Sequence record: OP310984.1
DNA length: 64,000 nucleotides
Reading direction: 5' to 3' (one strand)
Position 1 is the stretch's first letter, and each line of letters begins with the position of its first letter. Shown here piece after piece: positions 3,636 through 61,683 of the stretch. The notes beneath the pieces were generated by a model, which ran no database searches, was not told the origin of the DNA, and saw nothing but the letters and a program-made list of their open reading frames with translations. A program made the position numbers and the translations under genes.

Positions 3636-8966
<5,331 letters not shown>

Positions 8967-25487: not shown

Positions 25488-26651
25488 ATGTCTACTAAAT
25501 CTCAACTACCAAAGAAAATCTTCAATGTTGCTAAGAGTGATTATCATCTACCGGAAATTATTCTTGGAGATGATCCAGGTCTACTAGATTCAATCCACAC
25601 TCATTATCCTAAAATGTGGGAGCTATATAAGCGTCTAAAGATGCTTGATTGGGATGAGCTAGAATTTGACTTTTCCACTTGTCTAGTAGAATTTGAAACG
25701 TGTGATAAATCAACTTATGACATGATGATTAAGACACTGGCCTGGCAATGGGAAGCTGACTCTGTAGCCAGTCGTTCCATTGTTAATATTCTATCACCTG
25801 TCATGACAGATTCACGAGTATGGGCGGGATATGTACGTATTAATGATAATGAAGACGTACATGCTTTAACTTATTCTGAAATTGTACGTAATAGCTTTAA
25901 AGATCCTAAAGTTATTCTAGACGAAATTCTTAGGGTAGAAGAAGCACAAGAACGAATGGTTGCAGTAGCCCGCACTATGGGTGAAGCACATGACGCAGTT
26001 CATGCGTATGCTCTTAATCAGGTACCCAATGATCAAGAACTTTACAATAAAGTATTCATGTTCTTCATCGCTCTATATTTCCTAGAACGTATCCAGTTCA
26101 TGGCATCCTTTGCAGTAACCTTTGCTATTGGTCGTACTGGTGCATTCCAGCAAATTGCAGCCGCTGTTAAGAAAATTGCCCAAGACGAATTCGAAATCCA
26201 TGCACAATATGGACAAGAAGTTATTCGTGCACTACTGGCAACTGAACGCGGTAAACTCGCTTACAGTCAATGTAAAGATAAAATCATTGAACTACTATGG
26301 GAAATTGTAAAGACTGAAGTTACCTGGATTAATTATCTATTCTCTGAAGGTCGTGAACTAACTGGTGTTAATGCGACTAAACTTATTAACTGGGTACTTT
26401 TCAATGCTAATGCCGCAGCAACATTCCTAAGTATTGAAAATGATGTTGTAGAACAGTATCAAGTGGAGTTTAAAGAATCAGCTGGATTTGATTTTGTTTG
26501 GCCAGAGAAGAACCCACTTCTTTATATGGAAGACTACCTAGATATTTCATCAACCCAAGCATCTCCTCAGGAAGAAGAGAAGCCTGATTACATGGTCAAC
26601 GTTGTAAATGATGTTGGTGAAGAAGAAGAATTTGAGGTTGACTTCTTATGA
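25488..26651 (+). CDS. nrdB: Ribonucleotide reductase class I beta subunit
   Basis: EADS, ENEDVHALTY-like ExxHxxxY, LERIQFMASF and QDEFEIH di-metal motifs; follows nrdA. Confidence 0.93.
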   Translation: MSTKSQLPKKIFNVAKSDYHLPEIILGDDPGLLDSIHTHYPKMWELYKRLKMLDWDELEFDFSTCLVEFETCDKSTYDMMIKTLAWQWEADSVASRSIVNILSPVMTDSRVWAGYVRINDNEDVHALTYSEIVRNSFKDPKVILDEILRVEEAQERMVAVARTMGEAHDAVHAYALNQVPNDQELYNKVFMFFIALYFLERIQFMASFAVTFAIGRTGAFQQIAAAVKKIAQDEFEIHAQYGQEVIRALLATERGKLAYSQCKDKIIELLWEIVKTEVTWINYLFSEGRELTGVNATKLINWVLFNANAAATFLSIENDVVEQYQVEFKESAGFDFVWPEKNPLLYMEDYLDISSTQASPQEEEKPDYMVNVVNDVGEEEEFEVDFL

Positions 26652-27061
26652 TTAAGATTATCGCATTCGTAGTTTTAATGTGGTCCACTGTCCTATTTGC
26701 AGCAACTGAAGTAAAATCAACTACAGATGGTATTATTGCACATTCAGAATGTCAGCTAGTTGCTAAAGATAGTAGTGTTGTCGGCACTACTGTTGGAGGT
26801 GCGGTTGGAGCCACCGCAGGCGCTGTATTAGGTCGAGCAATCTTTGGTAAATCTGGAGGTTGGGTAGGTGGTTTAATCGGTGGTGCCGCAGGCGGCGCAG
26901 TCGGTAATAATGTTAGTGCTACTGAAACATTTCAATGTAAACTGATTGTTAATACAGATGGCAAGCAGTACATGGTTCAAACAGTTACCAATGAAAAACC
27001 AAAGGTTGGTGATAAAGTCACTGTTGTTGAAATGAATGATGGTACACGAGATATAATGTAG
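26648..27061 (+). CDS. Exported glycine-zipper 2TM protein (SlyB/YcfJ-like)
   Basis: Signal peptide; GTTVGGAVGATAGAVLG and GGLIGGAAGGAVG zippers. Confidence 0.7.
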   Translation: MIKIIAFVVLMWSTVLFAATEVKSTTDGIIAHSECQLVAKDSSVVGTTVGGAVGATAGAVLGRAIFGKSGGWVGGLIGGAAGGAVGNNVSATETFQCKLIVNTDGKQYMVQTVTNEKPKVGDKVTVVEMNDGTRDIM

Positions 27062-58106: not shown

Positions 58107-58188
58107 TAGATTTCCTCAAATAGTTTAATTTATCCCACCTAGTTTTAACCGTCCAGTCGGTTAAAAAGAGGACCCGAAGGTCCTCTAA

Positions 58189-58428
58189 TTATTTCTTATA
58201 ACTCTCAGGGCATCCCATTTTGAGTTTGCCATCCTTTGGGTCTTCAGCGAATAATACTTCATCTGGACACTTCTTAACAGGAGTGTCCTTCGCCTTATCT
58301 TCCCATTCTACAACAGGCATTTCTAATTTCTTACGAAATTGATACGTATCATAAAGAACATACGTAATCATTCCCATAAGAGAGATTACCCATACCCATG
58401 CAACAATTAGGATGATTCTAGTTATCAT
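58189..58428 (-). CDS. Small membrane protein
   Basis: 79 aa with N-terminal TM; UUCG terminator 58167-58186. Confidence 0.65.
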   Translation of the reverse strand: MITRIILIVAWVWVISLMGMITYVLYDTYQFRKKLEMPVVEWEDKAKDTPVKKCPDEVLFAEDPKDGKLKMGCPESYKK

Positions 58429-58795
58429 ACAACTCCTCGCCGACTATATTGAAACACCCATTACTGAGTTTTTCAGTCAGCATCTCACCAAGATCACTTC
58501 CCTCGCTCTTTGCCAAAAGCTTAAGTGCGGGATCAGTGAGATTTTGGTATATTACATCGACATTATCCAATGCGATATTAATAGCGAGTGCCTTATCACT
58601 CTGGTTTTTATCTATGGCAATGGATAGTTCATCTTGCAGCATTGCATTCATCTCCAATGGCTTACCGCCATCAGTGTAGAATTGAACCATATTCTTTGCC
58701 AAGCTGTGCAGCACGTAGCAAGATGACACGGTTACGGGTTGTGCATTAACCGACATTGCTACCATAGTGATAATGAGCGAGAAGACGTATTTCAT
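58418..58795 (-). CDS. Secreted two-cysteine helical protein (paralog 1)
   Basis: Signal peptide ending VNA; VTVSSC ... NGCFNIVGEEL. Confidence 0.65.
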   Translation of the reverse strand: MKYVFSLIITMVAMSVNAQPVTVSSCYVLHSLAKNMVQFYTDGGKPLEMNAMLQDELSIAIDKNQSDKALAINIALDNVDVIYQNLTDPALKLLAKSEGSDLGEMLTEKLSNGCFNIVGEELYDN

Positions 58796-58827
58796 CCTAT
58801 TTTCCTTTTGAAAGTATTCGATATGAA

Positions 58828-59283
58828 TTAAATGAGTTCAACAATTACCATGTGAGTGAATTTCTCACCAATATGCTTCATGCAGTAATTGCCATAATAC
58901 CCGCTGATAAAAGCTGCCAGATTAGGAGTAGTCACATTGTAACCTTGACTACGGATATAATCATGGATCTCTTTACTGTTAAGGTCATTATTGATTTTAT
59001 TAAGACTATTGAATACGAATGTTAACGCAATCCAATTATTGGTATCCAACTCATCTTTGAGTTTAGCAGAGTTGTTGAGCATAAGCACACCAACTTCATC
59101 TGCGCTATGACCTTCACTCATTCGAAATACAGCTTGTTTAGTAATGGTTTCAACCATTGCACACGACTGCACAGTGAGTTGAGCATCTTTTTTACCAATC
59201 TTGATTTCAGCCATTGCGGTATTGAACATGATACCGGTAATGGCAATGAGACCAGCGAAAGCTGCTGCAATTACATTTTTCAT
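58828..59283 (-). CDS. Secreted two-cysteine helical protein (paralog 2)
   Basis: Signal peptide ending AMA; LTVQSC ... NYCMKHIGEKF. Confidence 0.65.
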   Translation of the reverse strand: MKNVIAAAFAGLIAITGIMFNTAMAEIKIGKKDAQLTVQSCAMVETITKQAVFRMSEGHSADEVGVLMLNNSAKLKDELDTNNWIALTFVFNSLNKINNDLNSKEIHDYIRSQGYNVTTPNLAAFISGYYGNYCMKHIGEKFTHMVIVELI

Positions 59284-59300
59284 TTTAAATCCTTCTTCAT

Positions 59301-59684
59301 TTATTTAATGGTAAGAATAGTAATTTTTTCAGGATTTACTGGAACTTTAATTTTAGATTTATGTTGGAGAAACTCAACAACCACCATAGACTTATCCATT
59401 TTATACACTTCACATACTTTGACAAGCCTATCTACTACGCAACCAATTTTACCGGCATTTTGAGAAAAGAAAGATTTTGCTTTTCTAATAGCCTCGCGTT
59501 TCTCAAGCATTTCCATATGCATATTTTCAATATGTTTATCGCGTTGAACACGATTAAACTTACGCATATGTCGTTCGATCTTACTAATTTCAGAAGAGTG
59601 TAATGAATAAGCAGCAGCTTCTTTCAGTTTCTCATATACTTCCACTGCCATTACCACGTGATCATCTTCAAAATTTCTTTTCAT
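59301..59684 (-). CDS. Hypothetical basic protein
   Basis: 127 aa. Confidence 0.65.
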   Translation of the reverse strand: MKRNFEDDHVVMAVEVYEKLKEAAAYSLHSSEISKIERHMRKFNRVQRDKHIENMHMEMLEKREAIRKAKSFFSQNAGKIGCVVDRLVKVCEVYKMDKSMVVVEFLQHKSKIKVPVNPEKITILTIK

Positions 59685-59697
59685 ATCTATGCCTTTT

Positions 59698-60492
59698 TCA
59701 CTGTTTGATTAAATTTGACACTGCTTCTTGTTTACATTGAGTATTCATCCATAATGCAATGTCTTTGGGTTCTTGTCCAGTTTCCACCATATCGATAATG
59801 ATACGGGTATTACGTTGTGCTTTCTCACGGGCATTTAACATATCAGGATCATTAATAATGAATTCCCTACCCATAACTGGATCTAATCCAATATAAGCTT
59901 TAGATGCAATAGTTCTCACCATTGCTTCATATTGGTCACATCCACGTTCAGTTAATACAAGGTTATCTGCATTGGCACTACCGCCAAATAGCAAACCTAG
60001 GAATCCATAGAAAAAAGTGTGACGTATTGTCTTCCAACAAATACGCATCTCTTCATTTTTTGTATAAAGCTTTTCCCAATCAAACATTAAATAGAAACTT
60101 TCTTTTTGGATAGAAGGGTGTAACCAAATAGGTTTAATACTTACTTCAAGAAGTTTACTATTTGGATTTTTACCAATAAAGATAACTTCAACAATGGCTC
60201 GTGCTAAAGCATCTTTTTCTTTACCATTCCATCCAAATTTTATTTCATCAGCCGTGATATAAAGACGTATTCCGTCACCCACGTATTTGGGTAACCAAAC
60301 AGCTTTACCTAGTTGCATTGGAACACTATTAGGGATCCCCCCAACCATCCAGGTAGCATTGGTGAAATGAATAGCGACATCATCATTTAACCACTTTAGA
60401 ATAGCTGGCCTTACCCAGCTATCTACCAAATTACCACATGTCAATGCAGCTAGCATAGCCATGAGTATAATGACAATATAAATACTAACCAT
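59698..60492 (-). CDS. Membrane protein whose C-terminal third is a further two-cysteine paralog with an internal signal-like segment
   Basis: N-terminal TM; internal FFYGFLGLLFGGSANA then LTERGC ... TQC. Confidence 0.6.
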   Translation of the reverse strand: MVSIYIVIILMAMLAALTCGNLVDSWVRPAILKWLNDDVAIHFTNATWMVGGIPNSVPMQLGKAVWLPKYVGDGIRLYITADEIKFGWNGKEKDALARAIVEVIFIGKNPNSKLLEVSIKPIWLHPSIQKESFYLMFDWEKLYTKNEEMRICWKTIRHTFFYGFLGLLFGGSANADNLVLTERGCDQYEAMVRTIASKAYIGLDPVMGREFIINDPDMLNAREKAQRNTRIIIDMVETGQEPKDIALWMNTQCKQEAVSNLIKQ

Positions 60493-60495
60493 ATT

Positions 60496-60855
60496 CTACT
60501 CCAAGTTAAATTTAGTACCAATTGCTTCAACACAGTTTTCAGCTAGCCTATCTAGAATAGCTCCATTGGTAAATCCTTTTCGTTTATTTACGCGAATATC
60601 AACTAAGTTTAATTTAGCATATACGGTACCTGCATAGAACTCTAAGTCATCCATATCCTTACGAGAGATCATATCTAACTGCATCATTATCTCAAATTGG
60701 GATAGGTTCTTATCATAAAGCTCAGTTGCTTTTTGTGAAAGATTTACTGCCACATTACATGATTTCTTAGTAATACCCACTTCTACAGCGTGGGCAGGCT
60801 GACATGCAATGGACAGGATTGGCAGGAAAAGGAATAATAGCCAATTCTTAAGCAT
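60496..60855 (-). CDS. Secreted two-cysteine helical protein (paralog 4)
   Basis: Signal peptide ending AHA; ITKKSC ... ENCVEAIGTKF. Confidence 0.65.
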   Translation of the reverse strand: MLKNWLLFLFLPILSIACQPAHAVEVGITKKSCNVAVNLSQKATELYDKNLSQFEIMMQLDMISRKDMDDLEFYAGTVYAKLNLVDIRVNKRKGFTNGAILDRLAENCVEAIGTKFNLE

Positions 60856-60867
60856 GTTGTACCTCCA

Positions 60868-61275
60868 TTATTTTAGAGTAAGTGGTTTTGCTTCAAACGC
60901 ACCTGCCGCTACACAACGCTGGAAATAACCATCAATGATGAATTTCTCAGGAGTGGTCTTATAGACTTTAGCAGCATTTGTTGCACGTGGCAAACTTGCC
61001 TCAATTGCCATTTTATCTACCTTAGACCATAGGTAAAATAGACCAGTGAGTTCTTCAACTTTAGACTGGTTGGTCTTTAGATCTTTAGTGTTATTAAGGA
61101 TATAATGAATCCTTTCATAAGTCTTCATTTGCACTTCAGTTACAGATGCACCTTTTACAAACAATTCATCTGCCTGTTTTACAAACTCGATGCATGAATC
61201 ACGATTAGTGTACATGACAGCCGAGTTAGCAGTGATAGTTACAATAGACAACATAAATACAATTACATATTTCAT
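60868..61275 (-). CDS. Secreted two-cysteine helical protein (paralog 5)
   Basis: Signal peptide; TNRDSC ... QRCVAAG. Confidence 0.6.
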   Translation of the reverse strand: MKYVIVFMLSIVTITANSAVMYTNRDSCIEFVKQADELFVKGASVTEVQMKTYERIHYILNNTKDLKTNQSKVEELTGLFYLWSKVDKMAIEASLPRATNAAKVYKTTPEKFIIDGYFQRCVAAGAFEAKPLTLK

Positions 61276-61301: not shown

Positions 61302-61565
61302 TTAACTATTGGTTTCACCACGAGTATTGAATTCTAAATCCAATACAACTTTAGTAAATTCTTCCAGTGCACCACCCTCGTAGATGAGTGGGTCACTGTC
61401 ACCCCGGTACATGCTACCTACCGGTACTTGACCACGAAACACCATCAGCATATCGTTTTTTACTATGACATGATGTTCATCCCCGACAGCAATGTCTTGG
61501 ATGTGTCTCCAGCGTTCACGCAGTAAGCTGCAAGCGCACCATACGGATTTCAAACGTTCAGTCAT
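61302..61565 (-). CDS. Hypothetical early protein
   Basis: 87 aa; first gene after promoter at 61599. Confidence 0.65.
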   Translation of the reverse strand: MTERLKSVWCACSLLRERWRHIQDIAVGDEHHVIVKNDMLMVFRGQVPVGSMYRGDSDPLIYEGGALEEFTKVVLDLEFNTRGETNS

Positions 61566-61598: not shown

Positions 61599-61606
61599 GT
61601 AATATA
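61599..61606 (-). promoter_or_regulatory. Early promoter core TATATTAC
   Basis: GTAATATA plus tttaaatagtttaaat flank, after UUCG terminator 61646-61665. Confidence 0.75.
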
Positions 61607-61683
61607 GCTTTTTAAATAGTTTAAATACAAAAAAAGATAAATAAAACCCTCCCCGAAGGGAGGGTGTATATTAAGTAATTATT

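Follow-up and report, generated by a model that had tools for sequence, protein, structure and literature searches.

Five putatively exported two-cysteine proteins in an operon of Pseudomonas phage phiKZ probably form one diverged family

The stretch of DNA analyzed here, 64,000 nucleotides of sequence record OP310984.1 (the window), contains a run of small genes on its minus strand, five of whose protein products or domains are the subject of this report. We consider it probable that gp247, gp248, gp251, gp252, and the C-terminal domain of gp249 (gp249C) are diverged paralogues of one exported two-cysteine family in the phiKZ-like, nucleus-forming Pseudomonas jumbo phages. The family domain can probably be described as a helical bundle of 90 to 130 residues, preceded by a Sec-type signal and carrying one invariant cysteine in each of its first and last helices. 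Whole-domain profile similarity is clear for gp248, gp251, and gp252, moderate for gp249C, and weak for gp247 though above every control, and the membership of the last two draws further on predicted structures and gene order. Over the 4 kb around the locus, the DNA is 99.9 to 100% identical to that of Pseudomonas phage phiKZ and of 47 phages closely related to it. The RefSeq open reading frames (ORFs) of the locus are PHIKZ246.1, 247, 248, 249, 250, 251, 252, and 253, all without a gene name, and a literature search found PHIKZ247 to PHIKZ253 named in no paper.

Signal-like segments and the conserved cysteine pair

All five proteins have a hydrophobic N-terminal segment, internal in the case of gp249, that ends at an AxA-type site and is followed by exactly two cysteines (Table 1). 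An earlier note on this DNA, made by reading the letters and ORFs, had placed a cluster of divergent secreted two-cysteine proteins here. The five ORFs or domains do sit at the coordinates that it gave, all on the minus strand, and the second cysteine is late in each of them, 11 to 17 residues before the C terminus. The three similar C-terminal sequences that it quoted (GCFNIVGEEL, YCMKHIGEKF, and NCVEAIGTKF) are correct, as is the location of the cluster downstream of TATATTAC at 61599 (minus strand, 61606-61599). The note had also described an early T-x(3)-[SG]C motif. A motif of this type is present in all five, 8 to 16 residues past the site, but the spacing holds for gp247 only (T-x(3)-S-C), whereas gp248, gp249, gp251, and gp252 have T-x(2)-[SG]-C. 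Among the 167 window ORFs of at least 60 residues (24,187 residues in all), T-x(2,3)-[SG]-C occurs 14 times; five of these occurrences are the family proteins, in which the motif stands at a constant position.

Signal peptides were called by reading n-, h-, and c-regions and AxA sites and by a crude script. Both by eye and by the script, all five proteins and their relatives have these three regions as well as small residues at -3 and -1. By the script, a signal-like N terminus was found in 14 of the 101 likely window genes. Six of these follow one another in the operon, a clustering far above chance. The cysteine pair is equally constant beyond phiKZ: exactly two cysteines are present in all 35 mature domains collected, and in the alignment A2 (17 sequences) they form the only invariant columns.

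Table 1 Features of the operon in the window. Slashes mark predicted cleavage sites, and cysteines are given in mature numbering. TM, transmembrane helix.
Feature	Coordinates	Strand	Length (residues)	Signal	Mature length (residues)	Cysteines	Remarks
Terminator-like hairpin	61646..61665	-					8-bp stem, 6 GC pairs, T tail; ends the upstream gp246 (HD phosphohydrolase) unit
TATATTAC motif	61599..61606	-					AT-rich spacer; just 3' of hairpin 61665-61646
gp246.1	61302..61565	-	87	absent			Outside the two-cysteine family
gp247	60868..61275	-	135	1-18, ANS/A	117	Cys10, Cys103	
gp248	60496..60855	-	119	1-23, AHA/V	96	Cys10, Cys85	
gp249	59698..60492	-	264	ANA/D after residue 175	89 (C-domain)	Cys10, Cys78	
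gp249 N part	59968..60492	-					Residues 1-175: TM1, beta domain of about 100 residues, TM2 = internal signal-like segment (MRICWKTIRH-TFFYGFLGLLFGG-SANA/D)
gp249 C-terminal two-cysteine domain	59701..59967	-					Residues 176-264; predicted to have four helices, the first with Cys185 and the last with Cys253
gp250	59301..59684	-	127	absent			Outside the two-cysteine family (hhalign against groups, E 0.2-0.5)
gp251	58828..59283	-	151	1-25, AMA/E	126	Cys16, Cys109	
gp252	58418..58795	-	125	1-18, VNA/Q	107	Cys8, Cys96	
gp253	58189..58428	-	79				One TM; C-terminal segment with two conserved cysteines; member of the module, outside the family
Terminator hairpin	58167..58186	-					GAGGACCTTCGGGTCCTC then TTTTT; after gp253, closes the operon; placed on the + strand by the hairpin scan

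Sequence relationships among the five proteins

Relatives of the five proteins were gathered from the phages PhiPA3, Phabio, PS119XW, HPP-Temi, Psa21, D6, and RVTF4, from the metagenomic proteins P0004-P0013, and from the contigs L011, L014, and L033. When the five were compared with one another by BLASTP, only the pair gp251 and gp252 was notable (E = 1.5e-5, in a tiny database). A jackhmmer search seeded with the mature part of gp251 (signal removed) converged on gp252, gp248, and 12 relatives, and it recruited none of the 167 window ORFs that served as decoys. Comparison of profiles by hhalign likewise connected the gp248 group with the gp251 group (probability 83%, E = 8.5e-6, 97 columns) and the gp251 group with the gp252 group (E = 1.6e-4 to 6.2e-4, about 100 columns); gp252 set against the gp251 group gave E = 8e-5 to 6e-4 over about 100 columns. 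These alignments cover nearly the whole domain and pair cysteine with cysteine.

The connection of gp249C and gp247 appeared when they were aligned to the merged family profile of 28 sequences. gp249C matched this profile over 80 of its 89 residues (E = 1.9e-4, probability 48%) and gp247 over 92 columns (E = 7.5e-3, probability 5%), in both cases with cysteine set against cysteine. In the controls, reversed alignments gave E values of 0.1 to 0.3, and all 40 column shuffles of each comparison scored worse than the real value and covered at most 52 columns, while the neighboring proteins outside the family (gp250, the N part of gp249, and gp253) gave E values of 0.19 to 0.6. The all-against-all hhalign comparison that the earlier note had suggested thus linked gp248, gp251, and gp252 with one another, and gp249C and gp247 with the merged profile, but it yielded no direct group-to-group link for the latter two, which in pairwise and group-to-group comparisons reached only E values of 0.01 to 0.66 over short alignments.

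These short alignments leave room for another explanation, namely, that only gp248, gp251, and gp252 are true paralogues and that gp247 and gp249C are unrelated exported helical proteins that share such generic features as a signal, two cysteines, and helices. The A2 profile, which has no more than three matches in the phiKZ genome, the 5% probability of the alignment of gp247 to the family, and the readiness with which helical bundles match one another would all fit such a division. It accounts less well for the near full-length alignment of both proteins to the 28-sequence profile, with both cysteines in register and with scores above all shuffled and reversed controls, or for the first cysteine standing at mature position 10 in gp247, gp248, and gp249C. 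Moreover, in PS119XW and HPP-Temi the gp247-like genes adjoin those that resemble gp248 and gp251. Together with the structural matches described in the next section, these observations make the division unlikely; gp249C is very likely a true homologue of the family, and gp247 is likely to be one.

The earlier note had recognized no named family in these proteins, which agrees with our searches, since Pfam, NCBIfam, PHROGs, and the PDB returned nothing beyond unknown function, and neither Pfam nor NCBIfam contained any relative of the five. Word searches for more homologues added few, a search of the ESM Atlas returned unnamed clusters only and below a useful score, and a locus search with the gp247 alignment found one phiKZ-type contig and nothing else. 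In PHROGs, the five proteins have full-length matches of their own (E = 1e-56 to 4.5e-191) to PHROG 15284 (gp248), 22400 (gp251), 26535 (gp252), 27482 (gp247), and 22383 (gp249). All five entries are labeled unknown function and are kept separate, and their mutual link is unrecorded there, although gp251 also matches the PHROG of gp248 (E = 0.0026). The family described here would unite these five entries.

Predicted structures of gp247 and gp249

Structures were predicted for mature gp247 and full-length gp249, and the comparison of the family fold rests on these two models. Mature gp247 was folded with an alignment of three sequences, in which P0015 and P0017 were the relatives. The best of its five models had a predicted local distance difference test (pLDDT) score of 91.4 and a predicted template modeling score of 0.85; because the remaining four scored pLDDT 47 to 70, this model is to be read with caution. 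It consists of a five-helix bundle with a short beta pair formed by the N and C termini, and its first helix contains Cys10, its last Cys103.

Compared with the viral protein models of BFVD, the gp247 model gave non-self matches with TMq values of 0.41 to 0.68. The top match after gp247 itself was the 149-residue orthologue of PS119XW (TMq 0.68). Likewise, a 157-residue protein of Phabio was matched, which is the extra family member that the A2 profile found at 186 kb of that genome, as were the 125- and 150-residue proteins of Psa21, the products of its genes resembling gp248 and gp251. The matches also include the 151-residue entry A0A494W8Q1, which is probably gp251, because it has the same length and belongs to the same accession series as the 264-residue self-match of gp249, and a 175-residue entry. 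The strongest argument that gp247 belongs to the family is, in our view, that out of a library of all viral proteins its closest matches are members of this single family from syntenic loci.

The model of full-length gp249 (pLDDT 61) comprises a transmembrane helix (TM1), a beta domain, a second transmembrane helix (TM2), and four helices. Its C-terminal part matched PhiPA3 gp303, an orthologue of gp248 (probability 1.0, TMt 0.58), as well as a 113-residue protein of phage 201phi2-1. Predicted structures unrelated to one another would have spoken against the family; the gp247 and gp249 models instead match family members, and they point to a helical-bundle fold common to the family. Fold and sequence searches of the PDB found no relatives among solved structures, with no match to Spackle or to saposins.

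Several points weigh against reading the five as one exported family. The sequence link of gp247 is weak, the good gp247 model is one of five, and that of gp249 is poor; the Foldseek E values for the cross-family matches are no better than 0.01 to 0.07. In addition, export was read from n-, h-, and c-regions and AxA sites by ourselves and by a crude script, and the contigs from RNA sequencing runs considered below prove neither the timing nor the ends of transcripts. Taken with the gene order in other phages, the profile searches and the predicted folds nevertheless agree with one another, which upholds the earlier note's proposal of an expanded, highly divergent paralogue family, while the effector roles that it suggested, such as superinfection exclusion or inhibition of envelope enzymes or sensors, are treated below as possibilities. 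The family is real and previously undescribed, and it is of a familiar general kind, that of small exported phage accessory proteins.

The gp249 fusion

The N part of gp249 matches a set of proteins that combine a transmembrane helix with a beta domain, namely, PhiPA3 gp314 and its relatives (Foldseek E = 3.9e-5, BLASTP E = 2e-4). Since the BFVD matches of gp249 therefore fall into two sets, one gp314-like and the other the gp248 orthologue, gp249 appears to be a gp314-like membrane protein fused to a family member, and in the model the former signal peptide of this member now serves as TM2. A full-library search with gp249 yielded P0021, a distant relative along the full length (31% identity), and besides it a single repeat protein that was judged spurious. 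P0021 carries the same fusion without an internal methionine, which argues that gp249 is not the product of a missed start codon and that the fusion is old. L033, a metagenomic contig, carries a fusion of the gp249 type with 31% identity (6001-6759).

Positively charged residues stand before TM2 in phiKZ, in P0021, and in L009, a Logan contig from a phage that is about 80% identical to phiKZ, and acidic residues follow it. By the positive-inside rule, this distribution of charges would put the two-cysteine domain outside the cytoplasm. The beta domain of about 100 residues is probably cytoplasmic.

Distribution, gene order, and selection

The module lies downstream of the gene for the HD phosphohydrolase (gp246) in all phages examined. 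PhiPA3 gp303, 201phi2-1 gp367, PS119XW gp300-302, and Psa21 gp331 and gp333 are true homologues that occupy this same locus and have the same signal and cysteine pair. These jumbo phages carry one to three copies, whereas there are five in phiKZ, one of which, gp252, is specific to its lineage. We found three copies in PS119XW and in HPP-Temi (248-, 251-, and 247-like in a row), two each in Psa21, D6, and RVTF4, two in Phabio, and one in PhiPA3. The distant contig L033 also has three, a 248-like gene, a 249-like fusion, and a 251-like gene, then a gp253-like gene, so that the phiKZ order is kept there. The most widespread subfamily is that of gp248, with tblastn matches in PhiPA3, Phabio, PS119XW, HPP-Temi, Psa21, D6, and RVTF4. 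No gp247-like gene was found in PhiPA3, Phabio, Psa21, D6, or RVTF4. Among isolated phages, gp252 and the gp249 fusion are limited to the phiKZ lineage; the fusion was met in Phikzvirus and otherwise only in L033. The extra member in Phabio is a diverged protein of 157 residues (ITKDVC...CSKRIGETIEIPK; L024:1501-1971, Phabio 186,333-186,803) that lies about 70 kb away from the main locus, implying that copies can move within a genome.

L009 has the same genes as phiKZ in the same order, apart from gp246.1. Its proteins are 60 to 96% identical to those of phiKZ, and every cysteine of the five domains is kept. The ratio of nonsynonymous to synonymous substitution rates (dN/dS) between the two is 0.03 to 0.23 across the genes for which it could be computed and 0.03 to 0.16 for gp247, gp248, gp249, and gp252 (0.09 for gp247 and 0.03 for gp248), values that are rough because dS is saturated for gp251 and high throughout. 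As judged from these sequences, the operon genes appear to be under purifying selection.

Two side observations concern the family genes themselves. Within gp252, the window differs from phiKZ strains by four substitutions in 33 nucleotides (58640-58672) in all four RNA runs compared; the exact window sequence of gp252 was found on one contig and the common variant on 108. This clustered patch possibly stems from recombination. In addition, many "partial hypothetical proteins" of 60 to 100 residues that are labeled Klebsiella pneumoniae in NCBI (P0003, P0028, P0044-P0046, and P0064-P0072), encoded on contigs of 200 to 300 nucleotides, share 90%-identity clusters with phiKZ gp248, gp249, and gp251. 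They are most likely contamination of assemblies by phiKZ reads.

Processing of the gp248 signals

In the c-region of the gp248 signal, there is a conserved Cys-x-Pro. In 14 of 15 gp248-like signals, Cys-[QH]-Pro stands 5 to 6 residues before the AxA site (window 60787-60855; L002, L003, L004, L005, and P0007-P0012). Such conservation within a cleaved signal is unusual, and the motif may mark lipidation or other processing.

This motif brings to mind the T5 Llp protein, a phage product that is small and exported, as the phiKZ proteins are predicted to be, and that prevents reinfection at the envelope by blocking the FhuA receptor. Llp is produced early and has a disulfide; it is a lipoprotein and is not known to form a helical bundle. 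Were the signal cysteine lipidated, the gp248 subfamily would consist of lipoproteins of the outer membrane, with the task of masking a receptor as Llp does. One gp251-like member, P0013, does have a canonical LIGC lipobox. When the pattern [LVI][ASTVI][GAS]C was applied, however, P0013 was the only canonical case; the gp248 subgroup keeps the cysteine, yet most of its members are a poor fit to the pattern at positions -3 to -1 (SIA, FVG, FTG, MTM, and MVT). Every member also has a good AxA site 5 to 6 residues further on, and the gp248-like protein of L033 lacks the signal cysteine. A lipobox in this family is thus doubtful, and we give little credence to the lipoprotein explanation.

Expression and dispensability

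The TATATTAC promoter motif and the two flanking hairpins (Table 1) delimit what is therefore read as one unit, comprising the promoter, gp246.1, gp247, gp248, gp249, gp250, gp251, gp252, gp253, and the terminator. Nearly the whole stretch is present in 14 RNA runs from five studies. In run X10, one contig spans 57987-61583 and ends 16 nucleotides downstream of TATATTAC, which is only suggestive, since the end of a contig is no proof of where a transcript starts. The phage Churi protein gp059, a listed homologue of phiKZ gp248, is in the phage proteome 15 min after infection (PMC11849849), and by tblastn it is identical to phiKZ gp248. Early production, which is plausible for the family and predicted for every member, is favored by the early-type promoter motif and by the detection of this homologue at 15 min.

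With regard to dispensability, a transposon study of phiKZ yielded an orf252 insertion mutant that is viable and found orf184-304 to be largely nonessential under laboratory conditions (bioRxiv 10.1101/2025.11.23.690004).

Possible functions at the cell envelope

According to the mechanism that we propose, the operon would be transcribed early from the TATATTAC motif, which the earlier note took for an early promoter and which in phiKZ would be one of the virion RNA polymerase. The products would be exported by Sec and cleaved by signal peptidase I, after which the host DsbA would oxidize the cysteine pair and thereby create a disulfide staple between the first and last helices. gp249C would be either tethered to the inner membrane or released, gp253 would put a further two-cysteine segment at the membrane, and the periplasmic paralogues would each bind a different envelope target. 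The net charge of the mature paralogues extends from -9 in the very acidic gp252 to +3 in gp247, and this wide spread fits diversification toward different binding partners. From the sequences, we infer that these are exported, disulfide-bonded binding proteins that act on envelope targets from the periplasm.

The known protein with the closest layout is T4 Spackle (gp61.3), an early protein with a cleaved export signal and a 75-residue helical bundle, in which a Cys29-Cys81 disulfide runs from helix 1 to near the C terminus and which inhibits the gp5 tail lysozyme (PMC7677548). The phiKZ family shares this arrangement of a signal, a helical bundle, one cysteine just past the cleavage site, and another near the C terminus, with export and the disulfide being predicted. 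It differs in that its domains are larger (89 to 126 residues versus 75), that there are five copies, and that one of them is fused to a membrane protein. Similarity to Spackle was absent from the Foldseek search of the PDB, from the top 50 of a VIA fold search against 48,161 chains, and from a PDB profile search; because none was detected, the relationship is one of analogy and not of membership. As our best single guess, put forward tentatively, the target would be a component that incoming phages use for entry or for cleaving peptidoglycan, which would amount to a Spackle-type superinfection exclusion. In a more specific form, which we consider quite unlikely, the family would be an independently arisen set of Spackle-like inhibitors, with each paralogue directed at another incoming jumbo phage, whose apparatus for cutting the cell wall or for DNA entry (for example, the gp181 lytic transglycosylase) it would block, and with gp249 and gp253 serving as anchors in the membrane.

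Interference with host envelope defenses or sensors is about equally likely as Spackle-type exclusion. Here the proteins would counter periplasmic or membrane anti-phage defenses, envelope-stress sensors, proteases, or cell-wall enzymes, which would aid the long phiKZ cycle. Host periplasmic defenses against DNA entry reportedly exist, and early, exported, diversified paralogues of very different charge, as these are predicted to be, would fit host targeting equally well. The locus moreover lies within a large nonessential accessory region in which phiKZ anti-defense genes cluster, and some genes of this region are required only in particular hosts or conditions (bioRxiv 10.1101/2025.11.23.690004). 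On the other side, family-library, profile, and PDB structure searches found no similarity of the five proteins to any known inhibitor, and we hold the host-directed role, too, only as a possibility.

A role as periplasmic lysis regulators, that is, antiholins or lysis-inhibition sensors like T4 RI, is highly unlikely. T4 RI is indeed a small exported helical protein. Furthermore, phiKZ displays behavior resembling lysis inhibition, for which a signal arriving in the periplasm has been proposed (PMC12894885). The same study, however, places the lysis cassette elsewhere in the genome (gp141-144), with a holin whose periplasmic domain is small and a regulator, gp143, that is cytoplasmic, and the genes of the present operon go unmentioned in it (PMC12894885).

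Research on phiKZ has so far centered on its protein "nucleus" and on cytoplasmic events. The operon described here, probably an early one, is predicted to direct six of the eight proteins that it encodes to the periplasm or the inner membrane; five of these are diverged copies of one domain without a known relative. Should the prediction of export hold, they would be the first candidates for an action of nucleus-forming phages on the cell envelope, whether by excluding rival phages, by blocking envelope defenses, or by controlling wall enzymes. If the Spackle-like reading is true, a nucleus-forming phage would guard not just the cytoplasm but also the periplasm, and its copy number would reflect competition between co-infecting phiKZ-like phages. 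The role of these genes is directly testable, since the phage can do without them under laboratory conditions and transposon mutants have been made.

Neighboring genes and other features

The hairpin at 61646..61665 is conserved in L009, in which TATATTAC lies directly upstream of the gp247 homologue. The ORF between TATATTAC and gp247 in phiKZ, gp246.1, is absent from this relative and looks, from the comparison of the two sequences, like a recent insertion into the operon leader. gp250 is probably cytoplasmic.

gp253 shares 11 nucleotides with the end of gp252. With its pattern EWED...C...GCP, it shows the strongest conservation among the operon proteins (96% identity in L009 versus 60 to 85% for its neighbors), and a homologue is found at the equivalent place, after the gp251-like gene, in L033 (L033:8673-8942). 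It is predicted to be the sixth envelope protein of the operon, likewise with two cysteines.

Elsewhere in the window, the ORF at 26648-27061 (plus strand) was considered as a sixth family member on account of its signal and two cysteines and was rejected because it encodes a glycine-zipper protein. Its product of 137 residues has a clear signal peptide and a long Gly/Ala-rich glycine zipper, is unrelated to the two-cysteine family, and is a probable further envelope protein.

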